This document shows positions 5,617-62,570 of a stretch of DNA of 64,000 nt, one piece after another (positions within the stretch are counted from its first letter, which is position 1; every line of letters begins with the position of its first letter). The notes beneath the pieces are model-generated. The model searched no databases and had not been told where the DNA came from. It saw only the letters and a program-made list of their open reading frames with translations. The DNA comes from Fimbriosthenelais zetlandica. Taxonomy: Eukaryota. The DNA lies in contig OZ365117.1 in the NCBI GenBank assembly GCA_977030845.1, positions 3,410,001-3,474,000 of the forward strand. Reading direction: 5' to 3'. Made by a program: the position numbers and the translations under genes.

Positions 5617-7204
5617 AATTAATGGGTAAACATGATAAGTCCCACAAGTCAAAGAGCAGCCCTCGTTTAGCAGGTATGATGACGTCACAGGATGTCACGT
5701 GGTTTTGACATCCTGTGGCGTCATACTTGTTAAAGATGGCTGACTTGCATGAATCTATTGGTCTGGGGCACCTTATCTTAGATGACATCACTCATGGTAG
5801 AACATCCGGTGGAGCAGTACCCCATTAACACTGTAACACCAGCTCTTGTAATGGCGGGACAGGACCATGCATATATGGTAAATGTGCAGCAAGACCCTGC
5901 TAACATATACAATGGACTGTACATCCCGATACCGGAGTGAACATAGCATGACCAGGAGCAATAAGAATATCTGACACTCCATGTTTCATATATTTATCAC
6001 CCGGCAACGAATATCCGACTATCGACCACGAACCACTTCATCGTATAACTCAACTAGAGGAAGGAAGTGGACATTCCCTCTGTTATGTTGGACGGGGGAT
6101 CAGGAGATCTTCTCCTAGATTATATTTCCTTTTATTGGCTCAATTCAGTGAGAGCATATATCGATTCACATTGAGCCTTGGTCTTTAGGCATGGCACACG
6201 ACTGCTCAGACCTACGTCTGCATGGGCTTAGCACGGGAATATTTTATAATCCCATATCAGCAGAAATTTAATCAGATTTTTAGGCTGACCTATATTGGAC
6301 ATAAGGGGAATTTCGGAGAAGAAAATCTGTAACACAGGCAACAAATAGCATAACATGTGAGCATATGATTGTCATATTTATGGATCCAGGAATGTATTCA
6401 TTTCCATTATAGTGTGGATAAAATATCTTTGAGTGAGAGGTAAAAGGGAATAGGGAGGGTCTGTATGAAGGGACTGCATTCTCTGATGCTCAATTAGTTC
6501 AGCCATCAGCTGCTGGCGCCGGACCTACTTTGTACTTCATAAAAATGTTGTTTTACATCTTCGCCTTTAATTAAATGTGGCAGAAAATGTTAAGATCAGC
6601 AGGTGAAGTAAGCCAGGATAACTCCATGTGAAATTTATTAATGCGTGTATATATAATCTATATATTACCATCTATAATCCATACAAACCTGATACAGATC
6701 TCAGATATGACAACATAATGCTACTTTATGGGCTTCTCCTAAACGAAGCCCAAAGAAATCAGTCATATCTTAATGGAGTTGAAACGTTAAATCCCCAGAA
6801 GTGAATTTATTTGCTATTCTTGTTTTTGTAATAGCTGAGATGAATAGAGTCATTTCACGGGTCTCAATCATGCTACATTGGCGGCTACAATCTCACAGAT
6901 GATGGATTAATGCAGGTATTAAGAAGAAAATTGATTTCCCAAAAGAAGGGGAAGTGATCTTTATGATTAGAATACTTAAGACTGGAATCATAAGTCTTGA
7001 GAGTTAAAGACCTCCTACTAAATATTTTTTTAAAGTTGGCTTGGCAACGAGCAGCCAATAGATCCCAGAGGACTTGGAACTACTTTTTACTACCTTCTAA
7101 ACGGATATAAAAAACAGAAGTGGAGCAGGAATGATTTTTCTTTTTAAGAGATGGAATGGTGTATACATAATGCAACGAAATATGAGGAATCGTTACTCGG
7201 GGCT

Positions 7205-33327: not shown

Positions 33328-35892
33328 TGAAAATAGTTAAAATTCAGACATATCTCAGTTTAAAAGATGACATTTTGAGGGGCATACATATTTTTGGATC
33401 TAGTGAGTTGTTAATACTGTTGGTTCTAGTTCTGTATTTATATTACTGCCTATGGTGCTTTGTATAAATGGAGTCAACCTTAAACTTGCTGGGGGCAAAG
33501 GGCTACACTAAAGCTGTATATGTAAGCATTGCGGGTAGAATTTAGTGTTGTACATATAGAATGTGATAATAATGGGTGATAGGCAGGCAGGGGAGCTCAT
33601 TTTCTACCTCAATTATTCATCATCACATACAATGTTAAGTTTCATTACAGCAGGCTTTGTTTGAGACTGATTGGAAGCAGCTGCTTCGTTGTTTCTTACA
33701 TGAAGCCCATCTTTTCAATTCACTTTTTTATCCATTACAATATATTCGCGGCTTCTGCTGAAGTCATAAATAAATCAAGTACTATACTATCGGGGAGTAT
33801 GTTTACGATAAAGTAAAAGTATCATCGAAGACCTTAAAAAAATTACAAAAAAAACGCAGCTCACTGCCGGGGTGTATTGGACCATCCAGACCCTCCACAA
33901 GGCTCATTGTGGTTTTCTGAACCAAGTCATCACGGCTAATATTTATCCACCAGTATCCTGAAACTATTATTATTATTAGCCTAAGGGTTACTTGAATTAT
34001 AAATGAATTGTGGCGTCTTCAAGATGGGTCATTTGTAACTGAAGATCTTGGTGGTACAGAGCCGTGAAACAACAAGGCCATGGGAAGAGACTATTACGGC
34101 AAAATATGCCATTAGAGCAAGTATTACCTGGGTACAATTGCCACTAGTCCATCTACAACAAGCTTTTAATGGTAATAGATCTCACTGCTTATTAGCTACT
34201 GTCACTTAGGTCAGCTTTAGGTGGACGTGACCTTTAAAACTCGGTTCCGACTACACAAACATTAAAATTGTCACTAAATTCTCCGGGAAATTTGAGAGTG
34301 ACAATTCTTCTTTGGTGAAATCAATGATTGTTTATATTATAGAATGACAGAAGGTTATGAGCTTGTCGTTGTAGATGACAATCTGACCAGTTGACAGGTT
34401 GTATGACAATCTGACCAGCTGACAGGTTGTGAGGACTGGGCAGTGATGGCCATTTACAGCATCATAAATCAGTATGTAGCCACATTGTAGGTGGACGCTG
34501 TCTCTGATGCAATATAGGCAATAACCATACTATTACTGACATTCTGTCAGGCTCCAGGCATCCCAACCACTGCAATATTATTTTATATTACATACCACAG
34601 GATTTACTAGAGATATAACCTTTATTTATGAACGACCTGACAGCAAATTTCTTGCGGGGATTTGTTGTAGGAGGCTTGTAGGTCTCGGTAAGGGTGAGGT
34701 AGCCCCAATCTGGATCCTTGTCACAGCCAAAACTGAAACTCATGTGTCTCTAATGCTTAATGTGCTGTCAAGATGGCCTAAAATGAAACAAATATATGCA
34801 TGATGCATATATCCACATTTGAATGGTCAAATCTCTTTGATCAAATCATTTTGATATTTCACAGGGGGGCCTAAATGTACCTACACATGTGCTAGTGTTC
34901 TGGCAAGGGCGTCCCTAATCAAAATCCCATACAACAGGGTGATTATGTCCACAGATATTGTAAAGAGGAGATGGCGGTTGCTACACGGCCGGGTTTTTCT
35001 ATTTGTAATGCTCAGTCTGCTGCATGGATGTGAATAAATCAGTGATTAGTGAGCACCAGCTGTATGGTTATATTGGATCCTGACTTACACTGTCACTCAC
35101 TACTTCCAACAAAGCACTTGAACAAATATTGAGATTGATATATACCAAGCATCGAACTAGCACAGTGGCACACATGTATTCAACAACCTACTCCAGGTTG
35201 TCTTAAAACTGTCAATAAATCAACGACAATACAATGCTTGGTTCTCATAAATTATCATAACAGAATAGTCGGTACATCAACCTCAAAGTATACAGTGTGG
35301 ATGTTATGATTAATAAACAAATATTTAGAAAGGTTACTCTGAGAGGCTAATTAGCCGGTCAAAGCCTCCGCTAAGGTGATGTTGAAATTTCACTCTGGCG
35401 ATATTTACAAATATTGGATGGTACATGTTAAAACCATGGCTTGTGACAATATAATTAACTTCAATTATCAGTAAATATCCTAATTAGTTTCATAAATAGT
35501 CCCTCTTCATTTCATCAAAGGCTTCCTGTTTCAAAGATGTGTAACAGTAGTCAATAGTAATGTAGTGCATCGATGATAAGTCCTTCTTTGCACCCACAAT
35601 GTCAATGATTTCTGACTTAATTACCATTTCTCATCTGTCCTTTGAGTTGATATTTTTACTGTTAATAGCAGGAGTTGAAAGGAAGCAGATAGTCCCTTAA
35701 TAAACTCATTAAGACCCTAGTTGAAGTGCTTGGCAGGAATAACCTCTACTGGCCATCATTAAGCTTGATGACGATCGACTTCTGATTATGTCAAATGCAA
35801 AAAATTACTTAGCTACAGAAGAAGTGATAGCTGAGTGGAAGGTGACGCTCCTTCACCTTATCACACGCTGTAACAACACAATTTATGTACAA

Positions 35893-35921
35893 GTAACCGT
35901 AGCAACAGTTGACATGGAAAC
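35893..35921. promoter_or_regulatory. Tandem RFX X-box pair in the intron 12-40 nt behind the PDE1C2-like exon
   Basis: GTAACC-GT-AGCAAC (35893-35906) fits GTNRCC(N0-3)RGYAAC exactly. GTTGACATGGAAAC (35908-35921) is one mismatch from GTTGCCATGGAAAC. The two are 1 nt apart. Confidence 0.55.
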
Positions 35922-35932
35922 AGTGCACTCAC

Positions 35933-36026
35933 CTATAGTGTAAGATGTTCCATCGAGTGTAAATGTGGCACTCTTACACTTCTTAAACTGTTTAATCTGT
36001 CTACCAAATGGTCTTACTCCCGCCAT
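35933..36026 (-). CDS. PDE1C: First coding exon of a Ca2+/calmodulin-dependent cyclic nucleotide phosphodiesterase (PDE1, PDE1C2-type N-terminus): MAGVRPFGSRLKQFKKCKSATFTLDGTSYTI(G)
   Basis: Read manually on the minus strand. Start context caagATGGCG, 31 codons + 1 nt, then a strong donor ATAG|GTGAGT (phase 1). FKKCKSATFTLDGTSYTI aligns with vertebrate PDE1C2 FKKCRSATFSIDGYSFTI as recalled from memory (not database-checked). Too short to appear in the ORF track. Confidence 0.75.
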
Positions 36027-37893
36027 CTTGTGTGTGTTTTTTTTTTAATCTATCAAGCTTTCCCTTCCCGCTCCTCTTGCCTTGTCAGGTGTGGTACACT
36101 TTCCAAGTCAGGTGTTGGTTTCCTAATCCCAGAGTAATTAAGCCCAGAGATTAATTAGTTCTTCATTATCTCACTAGGAATTAGTGTTCACTACCTCTCC
36201 ACTGCCCAGCTTCTGATTCAACAATATTCTATCATGTGCAGCAACACAGATGCTACTTGTTCAAAGTCCTTAACTTTATATTTTTTTTTGTCTTTTAATT
36301 AAAAACAAATCTCCGCTTTTCCTGATAATTTTTCGTCAAGTTACTTCTCTTATTCAATCTTTGTTCGTCAATCTGAGCGGAGATGTCTGTCATTTACACC
36401 AGGTTTATGATATCACGAGTATAGTTTCTTCTCACGTCTTCATCTTCCTTTTTCTTCTTCTTCTTCGTCTTAGTTTGATTACAATGGTTTAAATTGAACG
36501 AATCGATTATCTTTCTTAAAGTTTCTGTCAGTATTTCAGTAGACATTCAAATTAAGCTGTCACTTTCATATGTTATCCAGTACTTCTTACTCTGAACAGT
36601 GGTAGCTTTTAATCCAGTGTGTTCAGATTATCCTTGTCCTTTCCTTTTCTTGTCATGATGAACCTAACTCTTAGAACTTCATCCACTGCTGATATCAGCG
36701 TGTTAAACATCAAACAATATTTCAACTAATTTCCATAGGTTTCAAATGATAGTCCTGTTAGATGTCTGATGTAATCTCAACAGTGACAGAGATTCATCAC
36801 AATACTGGTCGAAAAGTTGGTCCTAGAAAGTCCCAGAAAAAACAGCAGCTGAAGATTACAGCAAGCAGCAAGCAAGTCCAGCACGGAGTGTATGAGTCCA
36901 AGTATAGGAGGGCTTATAGTCCTCACATCAAAAGTTCACCATGAGACTGGTGTGAACTACGTCATATTGCGCCCTGTACTCCTCAACATGTGTTTTGGTA
37001 TACACTCATCTATGTAGGCAGACGTTTGAACTATTTTTACCCATTAACCATGCTGGGGGGTAATGAATTCTTGATGTTTACCTGGACGCAGGTAAGAGAA
37101 AGACTGGGGGAGAGTTGAGTTGAATGCTGTAGTATGCTCCACCACCTACTCACTCACCTTCACCCGTGTCCATGAGGGCTAGACTTGTGGCTTCAGATTA
37201 ACTCAATGGTTTAATATTCATATTAAATGATGTATAGGACCCAGATGGTGTTTACCGGTACACCTGTTGACAGGTTCAGGTATCAGATCATCTAGAGTAT
37301 GGCAAATTATTCACTCAATCCACGGACTATTGATTAATAATAAATAGGATCACTATGTCCCACCTGTGCTTCTGATAATCCACCAGGGGTTATGATGACC
37401 CTGGGGGGTATTGAAGCTCAATGTCCAGCTCTACTCCACAGATACAGGGTCAGAAGATGGGTCATTTAAAGGGTCAGTGAAGTCCGAGAGAGGTAGTGAG
37501 AAATCCAGAAGGTAACAAGAGTTGAGTAGTTGGGGGCATTAGTGTGTATAGTTAATCATACATACACCCATCATGGATATGTAAACAAGGTTAGCGGTGA
37601 TGGGAGTATAGGCTGTGGTACTGGTGGGTGGGTGGGGCATATAGGTACAGAGACTAATAACTTACAACTCACTAAGTCTGACGGAGGTCAGTGTTATGGA
37701 GACAGAGTGAGCTGCTCGTGAGTTTAGATATAGAGCCATTAAGAGTGATTGAGAGAGCTGGTCGTTATAGATTGAGTTGTGTCAATGGCTCAGTGTGGAG
37801 GTGACACAGGTGAGGTGGAGTAGTGGAAGCTACAGGTGTTAGTAGATGTGTGTGGATTATCATAGGGTGTGTGCTAGCAGCATCATGACCAGG

Positions 37894-42432: not shown

Positions 42433-44787
42433 TTTTTATTTGTTTCATTGGCGTTAAATTTCGCAGCAGCCAGGATCATGTATACAGCAGTGAGGCCACC
42501 TTTTCACAATGTTTCAAGAGGCACGACCCAAAATAAATTTCAAATGATGGGATGCCTTCAAGTAAGAACTGTATGGTAGCATCATTAGAGAGGATCTCAC
42601 ATTTCTTTGACGTGAGATGGTTTCAAATTGATTCAAAAGAAGGTATAGGTTCAATCTGACTGATTAGACACGCCTTCTGTGTCATCTCTGTCTTATTGAT
42701 AATATAAGGAAATAGGGAATGTATGGTATTTTTAATACTTGTAGAAAGCCACAGTAAGGCAGGAACCTGATGCCACTGATGGCTCTCTCCACCTTCAGGC
42801 TCATTTTACACATCCTCATGAAGTCATTAGTTGCCAGGTCCCACCTGCTATTCTGTCAAATGAAAAAAAACGAGATCTAAAAACTCTTCATTATACTCTA
42901 GAGGTTGTAGCTTCCACCATTGAATATAATTGTGAAATTATAATTATCAATTATTTCTTACTCATGAATACAACTGCCAATTGACCAGGCACAATCTGGT
43001 ACTGGCATAAATACAGCTGAGTGTATAGAACAATACTAAATACAAGAAATATCACCAGTTTACTATCTAGAGGATTACCTTCCACTGTCTTATCTGAGTT
43101 TGTGTAAACAGAAAAACTGGGTTGCAGCGAGCAGGTTCAAAAACCGACCCCTGAAGACCTGGCGGTCATATTGGCAGCCGTTACGGCGTTTTTGTGATTT
43201 ATTAAGCAGTATACCTTATCAAGGAAACATTTATGACATTCAATCTAGTTACCAACAAGATTTATGACATCTCCTGAGGCTAAGTCCCAAACTCGGACTT
43301 CACTTGCAAGGAAAACCATTACCTTAAACCCAAGCCTTATCAGCATATCCCAGAAAGCATTTGTTAAACCGGAATTTGGCGGAGTTCAGATGGCACGACT
43401 GGACGCGTTGACGTGGCAATCTCTCGTCCTAAACGAGATAGTACGAGACTTTGGAGAAGGATTGAGGAATGAGTCCAGAGGGTATTTAGCTAGGGACTGA
43501 TATTTAGTGAAATGTATGAAGGCCTTGTATTTCTCTCACTGATATGCCTATCATGGAGTGAGATCTTCCGAATATTGGTCTTTGGAATATCGGTCGCTGA
43601 ACTCAGGATTTATTTCAATCAAGTTTTCAGTTCAGCCTCAGAGATTTGTATTTGAATGACGGTATCAATAACCCTATCACTCTACTACTATCTCCTGTCC
43701 TGAATAAGAAGACCCCGATTGCTGCAACATTAAATACCAATCAAAATCCCCAGCATTACAATTCTGACAGTCTGCATAGCACATGGAATCAAACAAGCGT
43801 TCCACCATCCAGTGGCTAGCTACCATATGCTACTGTGACTCGCTGCGTCAGGTCTGCCAACATTTAACACTTAAACAGGTCCAGTGGTAGTAGTACAACC
43901 TTTAGAATGGTCACAGTTAAGACTAACAGTGAATAATACATGAAGTTTGATGAGAAGCCGGGACATTTGTATGGTAAAGCTGTAGCCAGGCCTGGGGCCG
44001 GCTGCTTCATGCCACTCCCACCCATCCCAGTTACACTGATATAAAAATGGTCCGGGTGGGACCAAGAATAGAAGACCCTTAAATCCTGATAAAAGTTAGC
44101 CTCGGGAGATAGATTTTACAACTGGAAATGGAAAAGTCCTCGCACAATTAAAGGATAGAGAAACTTTGGGAAATTTTTGACCAGATTAAAAATACAACAC
44201 ACGTTAAAAATACAGCGCATAGAAGGAGAATATATAAGAAACATCTCCAATTATTAGTGGGAATATTATAAAAGATTATGGTGATGTTAATGATTGTTAT
44301 TTGGTTCTCATCCCGAAATGAGGACAATAATATATATGAGAGCTTCTCATTTTACGTTTTGATGTAGGAGCTAATTTACTCAGTACATCACACAGTGAGA
44401 AGACTTCTCTCCCCAGCTTGTGAAGTAAGGGAGAAAAAGGCAGGTGGTGCGGGAGGAAGATCACAGCCCAGTCTGGTTTTCTCCGCCTGTGCTTTACTCT
44501 CAGTGTAAGCTCCAGTGTAATGGGTTTTACCCTCATTCTCTCCCCACCACCTGCTGCTCCTCTACAGCTACATTTCATCACTTCTATTCCCCTCAGTTCA
44601 GTCTACATTCTCTTACATGATTATGTTGTGAATCGCAATGATTTCTTGATGCCAAGAGTGAAAAGGTAAATCTGTATGTCAAAACTTTCAAATGTGATTT
44701 CAAGTGAGGAGAGGCTGAGGACAAGATGCTTGTGGAGGGAACCAGCACCATGAATGGATTGTACAGCTTTACCAAGCAACATCAACA

Positions 44788-44817
44788 GTTGCCATGGTAA
44801 CTGCTGCCCTCTGGTGG
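44788..44817. promoter_or_regulatory. Perfect X-box abutting a CTCF-type motif
   Basis: GTTGCCATGGTAAC at 44788-44801 and CCACCAGAGGGCAG on the minus strand at 44804-44817. Motif match only. Confidence 0.45.
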
Positions 44818-59693: not shown

Positions 59694-62570
59694 TTTGTTT
59701 TTCCTGATTTAACGTGACCGAAAAAAACACTCTAAATTCAACACTTCCCTCGGTGAATTTCCTTGGCTAAATTTGACTCAATAAGAAGCACTTGGTTCTC
59801 GTCAATTTTCTCGTCAGTTGACACCAAACGATGAATGCAGACGAATAGTTGATGAGGACATGAGGCGCAGGCAATTAGTGTTCACCGTGAACTCAGGTGA
59901 CGTTATCAACTTAAATGACAGCTCTGGAGGTGAATTAACACCGGTGTGAGGTGATGTCCTCAATGTGGATGATCTTTCTCATTGGGAGCAGATTAATTCA
60001 TAAACATGGGTATTTGATAATCCAAGTAAGGAGAGATGAACTTGGAATAAATGCCGACCCCATGTACTGAAATATTGATGTGGATGTCTCACCACTGTCC
60101 GGTCTGGTGTCGAGGATGGATATGTCTGGTGATAACTTATAGATTCGGGTTAGTTGTAAGTCAATGCTTTCTGATGTGTGAGAACAATAAGTATGTCCGA
60201 ATCTGCCCACATAAACCAGTATGAGAAAGTCCACAAGAACAGCTATATTTGCCTCCACAGTCCATCAATAGGGGTTCATTTTTGTCTGTTGTCAAACAGT
60301 TCGATTCAATTCGTACGATCTTGGCAGCAAATATCCATGACTTTTCTTCTCCGATACTTCAGGAATTCCTGATGATTGGCCACGTATAGATGTATAAAGT
60401 GGGATGACCTTTGAGTTGACCTCAAACGTCCCAAGTTTAGCTCAGATTTTCTCGTAGATCAGCCTTTCAGGTTTGTGGATCGATGTCCAGCAAAGCTCAG
60501 TGACAGAGCATGGTGCAATCAATACCTCTCAGCCTATCACAACACCAAGCTGAAAGCTTTGTTTTCAATGTTTTAATTTTAACTTTGTGCGTCAGTATTA
60601 AATCCAGTTTCAGGTTCTCTGATTTATTTGTAATGCTGGTTTCTGTTCCTTGGTCTCATTAAAAAAGATCAATTCGTTTTGCAGATAATATTGCTCATGA
60701 CACTGAGCATTAGGTTATCACTGGATTTCCTGTAGTCAGGGGTTAATATGTGATAATATCCAGTCTCATCAGGTTCTCTCAGGGGGAGGTATATTTATTA
60801 TATGTATATTAAAGTTCAAATCCAAGCCATATCAATGTACAGCTTATCATGCTGTAAACACAGTTTCAATTTCAAGAAGTATGATTTGAATCTACAGACC
60901 TGGCTGAAATGTCCTCGGTCGGATACAATTTAATGATTTCCTTTTAGGCAAAAAAAACTGTGTTTTTGAATGTCAGTAACGAACAGAAATACACCAATTC
61001 AAGCATTAAAAAGGGACAGGATGGCTTTAGCAGTTCATATGACAGGACCTGAAGTCTGATTCACTTTTTCTGTTGACTCTAGAAGGATGCATTACATATT
61101 GAGAGTCAGGATGGCAGACTGTCTTTCACTCAGTTTTTTTTTCAGAAGGTGTAAGATGGTACTCTAATCATATGTTCATCTGTGCAGGAGGGAATGTAGA
61201 AAGGTCATGTGGTTTGGAATGTCGAGTTAAACAGGGATATAGTGTCTATATAATGATGAAATTATAATGATAATGAAACAAGAGGACAATGAAAATAGTA
61301 GTAATGAAATTATAGCAAAAGGCAGAGGAAAAATAGACAAAGGCAGATGAATTAAAAGAGGTAGCGAATGAAATAAAGTAGGGAAATTTTCACACCTTCT
61401 TTCTGTTTCAATGTGTAAAATATTCTTCAATTATTTTACGATGCGGAGAACTTAGTTTTATCTATCGCATTATTGCCGCGATTTAATCTTCAGGATGCTC
61501 AGGACGTCCTCTTTTGTAAAAATTATGAAAGGAAAGAATGAGATTTTGTTTTTAAGAGGAATCTGGTACTAATTGACAGGGCACTGACATTTTCAATGTC
61601 GATCGGAAGCTGCTTTCAAATGAATATTCCGATTTATAACCTCACTAAGCCAGATAATGAAATGACAGGAAACAAAATTCACCAAAATCAGAAGATTTTG
61701 TAAATAATTTAACGAAATCCTAAAGGTATAGGTTTAAGTAAATATATCCAAAACTCCATATATAGGTGTTTCAACAGAGGGGTACAACAAATTATATAAA
61801 TACAAAAAAAATGTAGAAAAGTCCCCACAGACGAGCCCTAGTTGGCCAGAATGTCCTAGTGAGCCTCAGATAGTGAATATGATGAGTGGTGAGGAGGAAT
61901 TGCTCAAAAGTGCTCTTCTATCCACTCCCAGCTGCTCCTGAATGTGATTGCATTTGCTGCAGGAAAGGTAAGCCAGTTTCCCTGCTATGTACCTGTCCCG
62001 TTCAGGAGGTGATTGCTCTGAGATATTGCTTGCACCACCGAGAGCTGCTCGTCCCTTCAATATGAGCTGCTCCGTCAGAGAGAGTGTATGTCCCTATCCA
62101 GGGTCTGAACCAGGCGTAGCACGCTTTAAGAGGGCATCTCCAGGACCTAGTTCTCCACTGATCCAGCAGGGCGTTATTCGGCGCCAGGCGTACTGCTGGT
62201 GCAGCCTTGTAGGTTAATGTCCCTATACTACATGTATAGGTAATTGTGATGAAGGTGTCATTCTGTCGTATAGATATGAAGGGTTAGAGAATGACTCAGC
62301 AATATATTATACAGAAGATGTGGCAAGTAAGAGCTGAATAATGTCCTATAGTACAGGCTTCGGCAACCGGATTTATTTTGGATACAGCAATGTACACAGC
62401 AATGTTACTCCGTGGCTCAAAAAAATATGGAGCAATTTTTGCAATTTTTGCAGCGAGACTTCTATGCTGATTGACCAATAAAATAAAGTCCAAATAGCCC
62501 CAAAGAACTAGGCTTTAGGCGACTTCTTTCTATCCCTGTCAGTATATGTGAATTTGGTCTCTACTCTGAA

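Follow-up and report, generated by a model that had tools for sequence, protein, structure and literature searches.

Directly after one of the alternative first coding exons of a PDE1 gene comes a 41-nt island that we read as a cis-element of RFX type, with a paralogous copy, close to an alternative promoter of the gene. We give this reading, which is drawn from the sequence, a probability of roughly 45%. The island occupies 35890-35930 on the minus strand of the window, by which we mean the whole 64-kb stretch of DNA analysed here (C29:3410001-3474000 in genome coordinates). It takes in positions +3 to +9 of the donor region, a variant X-box (site B), the palindrome CAACTGTTG and two direct GTTRCT half-sites, and it has a sister copy 8.9 kb upstream. 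A sequence-only reading of this DNA had proposed that RFX factors control the exon through two tandem X-boxes, that the resulting PDE1 isoform is cilia-associated, and that the link may predate the protostome-deuterostome split. The idea of an RFX-type element is supported by the approximately 9-fold enrichment of the motif class to which site B belongs and by the paralogous island, but the ciliary and ancient parts of the proposal found no support. Should the element prove genuine, it is a concrete cis-element, open to testing, by which one of several PDE1 promoters is chosen, and it would connect Ca2+/cyclic-nucleotide signalling with an RFX programme in a spiralian.

Placement of the window at the 5' end of a PDE1 gene

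We found an exon encoding the PDEase_I_N domain (PF08499, 111 bits) at C29:3320180-3320362 and exons encoding the PDEase_I domain (PF00233) at C29:3293802-3298760. All of these lie on the same strand as the exon under study and downstream of the window, which would therefore cover the 5' portion of a PDE1 gene that extends over more than 150 kb. The exon in question, at 36026-35933 (-), opens with an ATG, preceded by an in-frame stop, and it consists of 31 codons plus one nucleotide (phase 1). It encodes MAGVRPFGRQIKQFKKCKSATFTLDGTSYTI plus one base, with the peptide ending in KKCKSATFTLDGTSYTIG, and its last nucleotides, ...ACTATAG, are followed directly by a GTGAGT donor. A paralogous alternative first coding exon at 8040-7875 (-) ends in VVRLDGCRYTIG (peptide ...LDGCRYTIG), and is likewise in phase 1 with a GTGAGT donor. 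A third, shorter one at 59693-59651 (-), MSDRKKLRHKYIIK, is also in phase 1, with a GTAAAC donor. Altogether, the shared PDE1 exons are preceded by no fewer than three first coding exons in phase 1 (59693-59651, 36026-35933 and 8040-7875). Judging from its strand and phase, from the paralogous exon at 8040-7875, and from first-exon ORFs in relatives, the 36026-35933 exon probably joins the PDE1 domains.

This exon also appears to be a first exon with its own promoter, as suggested by the upstream in-frame stop, the lack of a polypyrimidine acceptor, and a local peak in the CpG observed/expected ratio (CpG o/e). The CpG o/e averages 0.44 across the window and reaches 0.62-0.79 both immediately 5' of the 36026 exon and in the surroundings of the 8040 exon, as would be expected if each had a separate promoter. 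The putative promoter region of the 36026 exon, at 36001-36750 (-), contains a TATAAAG at 36280-36274. We also observed a motif, GTGAACACTAATT followed by (G)CCT, at 36175-36191 (-) and 59869-59885 (-), which places it upstream of two first exons, 165 nt from the ATG of the 36026 exon and 192 nt from that of the 59693 exon. It has a TAATT core, matches the window twice against 0.08 matches expected, and could be a promoter element that the duplicated modules share.

Two unequal X-box-like sites behind the first exon

Reading the sequence confirmed the positions of the two motifs claimed for the intron behind the 36026-35933 exon, as well as their 1-nt spacing. Site B, an X-box variant, lies at 35921-35908 (-) and reads GTTTCCATGTCAAC on the gene strand. 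Site A lies at 35893-35906 (+), where it reads GTAACCGTAGCAAC, an exact match to the consensus GTNRCCNNRGYAAC; its gene-strand sequence is GTTGCTACGGTTAC. A single T at 35907 separates the two. The sites together cover intron positions +12 to +40 of this minus-strand PDE1 gene, and the ATG of the exon is 106-134 nt upstream of them. Because functional human X-boxes are mostly located within -500 to +500 of the transcription start site (PMC5838959), a position behind this first exon is compatible with function.

Site B differs from the strict consensus at two positions on either strand, and it can be derived from the palindromic form of the consensus by a single G-to-T change. Site A, when read on the gene strand, resolves into two direct half-sites, GTTGCT and GTTACT, with ACG between them. 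Within the window, exact consensus matches amount to three strand hits at two sites against 0.15 expected from shuffles, which is ordinary for a genome with a density of about 1.4 per 64 kb, and matches with up to two mismatches occur at the level of chance (60 against 58.3 in shuffles).

Pattern counts across the 447-Mb genome, in which the control for the full consensus was the reversed pattern, separate the two sites clearly. The full consensus GTNRCCNNRGYAAC gave 9692 strand hits against 1261 for its control, a 7.7-fold excess. The subclass with a GT spacer had 121 matches against 63, and the form taken by site A, with GT and then A, had 25 against 37 and showed no excess even when CpG depletion was allowed for. 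The wider class GTTNCCATRTYAAC was enriched 3-fold (179 against 60), and the form taken by site B, GTTNCCATGTCAAC, was enriched 8.75-fold (105 against 12). Since the class of site B is enriched while the subclass of site A is at background, the variant site B is the credible one of the two. Both of the X-boxes that had been proposed are thus present as motifs, but they are unequal. There is a caution in this result, in that consensus matching ranked the sites wrongly: the exact match belongs to a form at background, and the variant to an enriched class.

The X-box as a genome-wide motif

Most occurrences of the consensus take the form GTTRCCATGGYAAC and are found in unique sequence (e.g. C1:417236, C1:5085486 and C1:6528201). 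When 20 strong sites were sampled, 19 had unique flanks, which rules out a repeat family as the source of the X-boxes. One pair shares 202 nt: X-box sites in C1:5408000-5408399 and C1:6691000-6691399 lie within a shared repeat of that length (88.6% identity, opposite orientation), so that a minority of X-boxes are carried by a dispersed repeat. RFX DNA-binding domains are also encoded in this genome, at six loci or more. Taken together, the 7.7-fold excess, the mostly unique flanks, and the presence of RFX genes indicate that the X-box is a real, selected motif in this genome. Strong X-boxes showed no association with CpG-rich promoters or regions.

Two candidate features of X-boxes in general were rejected. 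An extension by CTGTTG had six exact matches in the genome, about the number estimated from the count of core sites, and a second site within 40 nt was found at only one of the 20 strong sites, so tandem neighbours are not typical. Among the RFX loci, we observed two DNA-binding-domain matches back to back in one open frame of 168 aa at C10:26411535-26411966, which suggests either that the exon for this domain has been duplicated in tandem or that a single RFX gene carries two such domains. Near the X-boxes sampled on C1, we also observed kilobase stretches that are open in up to five frames; these, together with spurious Pfam matches (pentapeptide, SepQ, PAS_4), point to low-complexity or tandem-repeat DNA.

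A 41-nt island with a sister copy upstream

Apart from site A, the window contains one exact X-box, at 44788-44801. It is a perfectly palindromic one, GTTACCATGGCAAC, and it lies in a sister island at 44773-44811 (-), 8.9 kb upstream. Local alignment of 35930-35890 with 44811-44773 extends over about 42 columns with a score of 32, compared to 18.9 +/- 2.5 for shuffles, the highest of which reached 29. Two non-overlapping sub-patterns of the island, one consisting of the 5' flank and the X-box and the other of the CAACTGTTG palindrome and the half-sites that follow it, each match only these two loci in the 447 Mb, with no matches for the controls. The 140-nt flanks of the two islands are unalignable on both sides (z = 1.1 and -0.3). 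The alignment score, the confinement of the sub-patterns to two loci, and the unalignable flanks argue that the islands are paralogues, and that they represent neither a repeat family nor a general composite motif.

Both islands have the same anatomy, in which a single X-box is followed by a T and then by two direct GTTRCT half-sites, and in both the X-box has a 2-nt AT spacer. The reading of site A as an X-box is lost in the sister copy through a 3-nt indel; the "tandem X-boxes" are therefore not the conserved anatomy. A 9-nt palindrome, CAACTGTTG, straddles the end of the X-box in each island (35903-35911 and 44783-44791). The CAACTG within it may resemble a Myb-type site. Beside the sister copy there is no recognisable exon or GT donor, the ORFs around 44788 have no Pfam matches, and the CpG o/e around it is low (0.14-0.21). 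This orphan island may be a distal element, or it may be all that is left of a first-exon module that has since disappeared. No X-box is found beside the 8040-7875 exon, where the nearest X-box-like site is at 7035-7048 with one mismatch, and the start of its intron is unrelated to that of the 36026-35933 exon.

The alternative that survives best, which we consider a serious though less probable rival, is that the motifs are neutral sequence, with site A a chance match and site B and its flanks the remnant of a short-patch copy or of an older local duplication. Identity along the island is even, without a peak on the X-box, and even identity between unrelated flanks could also result from a neutral short-patch copy. 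The background frequency of the site A subclass, the chance-level matches and ordinary exact count in the window, and the lack of conservation in the relatives examined (see below) fit this explanation as well. It accounts poorly, however, for the roughly 9-fold enrichment of the class of site B and for the retention of a perfect palindromic X-box in the sister copy amid surroundings that can no longer be aligned. A position 12 nt from the donor of a first exon is also improbable by chance, as we estimate that roughly 2-3% of the window lies so near a known first exon.

Conservation of the exon and of the sites in relatives

The core peptide KKCKSATFTLDGTSYTIG opens short ORFs in several other spiralian assemblies and is found in Magallana gigas K1PIC6. 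Because the peptide starts ORFs in several relatives, the exon appears to be conserved among spiralians. The animal studied here is itself suggested by a B9D2 search to be a worm-like spiralian. Length-filtered searches with the exon peptide returned only short, exon-sized spiralian ORFs, and a phmmer search of 1.84 billion representatives with the 31-aa exon returned one relative's ORF along with bacterial WD40 repeats, which we treated as noise. The label "PDE1C2-type" that the exon had been given is a tentative one. A long vertebrate PDE1C isoform has an FKKC-SATF-DG N-terminus to which the exon may be similar.

The sites themselves had been expected to be conserved, and this was not borne out in the spiralians examined. 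In two contigs of an oyster-like bivalve, no X-box-like site was found from about -1.35 to +0.85 kb of the orthologous exon. Reading through into the intron from the ORFs of two to three other spiralian lineages (33-111 nt) revealed no X-box either. These relatives may be distant ones. With no X-box at the orthologous exon in other spiralians, the proposal of a link older than the protostome-deuterostome split is without support among the relatives examined.

X-boxes and ciliary genes

The proposal at the outset was that RFX drives the exon in ciliated cells, producing a cilia-associated PDE1 isoform that is ancient and homologous in its logic to mammalian PDE1C2. An RFX-type element is plausible here, the exon peptide has been kept across spiralians, and enrichment of PDE1C2 in olfactory cilia has been published (PMC2151529). 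The step from X-box to cilia, when checked against core ciliary genes of this genome, found no support. We located 15 core ciliary genes by Pfam family (IFT20, IFT46, IFT57, IFT81, CLUAP1, BBS1, BBS2, BBS5, a second BBS2_N-family locus, three B9-domain genes, CFAP20, PACRG and RSPH3) and for each scanned the 4 kb or so that precede its N-terminal-most exon. The promoters were thus placed from the N-terminal-most Pfam exon and not from transcription start site data. None of the 15 had an exact X-box in this interval, and when spacers of 0-3 nt were allowed, no well-scoring X-box was found upstream of any of them. Because scans for full X-boxes misled an earlier study of choanoflagellates (PMC10530576), we also checked half-sites. 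GTTRCCA was not enriched from -1000 to +200 of the ciliary exons, at 0.06 per kb compared to 0.11 per kb further away; its density in the PDE1 window is 0.23 per kb.

Given that 0 of 15 ciliary genes have one, an X-box match is no safe sign of a ciliary gene in this genome, as far as promoters placed from exons can tell. The genes near strong X-boxes point in the same direction. Few genes could be named there, and Pfam gave no matches for ORFs next to the sites, but those identifiable near 20 strong X-boxes are non-ciliary, belonging to the p66/GATAD2, Utp12, PCI and IntS14 families. An SV2-like match near one strong X-box lies in repetitive sequence. In the literature searched, we found no link of RFX or X-boxes to PDE1C or pde-1. 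Together with the lack of an X-box beside the corresponding exon of the relatives examined, these results leave the reading of an ancient ciliary isoform unsupported and improbable.

A different possibility, which we also regard as improbable on the sequence evidence, is that the island is an RFX target within a rewired and largely non-ciliary regulon, in which the X-box has expanded (approximately 9,700 hits against approximately 1,300) and is missing from core ciliary genes. If this were true, RFX would run other programmes in this organism, for example neuronal signalling genes like the PDE1 promoter array, by way of paralogous composite elements.

A role at the RNA level, as an intronic splicing regulator or a structure controlling donor use, is the least probable of the explanations and is unlikely: the island does start at intron +3 and so overlaps the donor region, but its predicted RNA fold is weaker than that of shuffles (z = +1.68), the 64-kb window has no Rfam match, the sister copy has no adjoining GT donor or exon, and the paralogous exon at 8040-7875 has an unrelated intron start.

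A possible mode of action

If the island is a paralogous RFX-type element, it would be a 41-nt composite of an X-box (site B), a T and two direct GTTRCT half-sites that begins inside the 5' splice-site region. The two islands would be old paralogues that arose by local duplication within an array of alternative 5' modules. In the most likely mechanism, an RFX dimer would bind the X-box, and additional RFX monomers might occupy the half-sites; the RFX monomer site has been given as GTTRCY (PMC10530576). The element at 35890-35930 would then be promoter-proximal and downstream of the start site, where it might tune the use of the alternative promoter, and the copy at 44773-44811 would serve as a second, more distal site. 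A ciliary role would be only one possibility for such an element.

Comparison with known systems

The island resembles the RFX X-box (GTNRCC N0-3 RGYAAC) in being a palindromic inverted repeat near a probable transcription start. It differs in that it is intronic, 12 nt past the donor of a first exon, and in that it is flanked by two direct half-sites and duplicated 8.9 kb away. Unlike the X-box of ciliary RFX targets, the motif here was not found at the 15 core ciliary genes. With mammalian PDE1C2, which is enriched in olfactory cilia (PMC2151529), the gene shares its enzyme family and the production of isoforms through alternative 5' exons, whereas RFX control of PDE1C was not found in the literature searched. 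The last comparison is with arrays of alternative first exons that each have their own promoter. Although the X-box island accompanies only one module here, and the second island stands alone without an exon, the PDE1 region resembles such arrays in having at least three phase-1 first exons and short islands common to modules.
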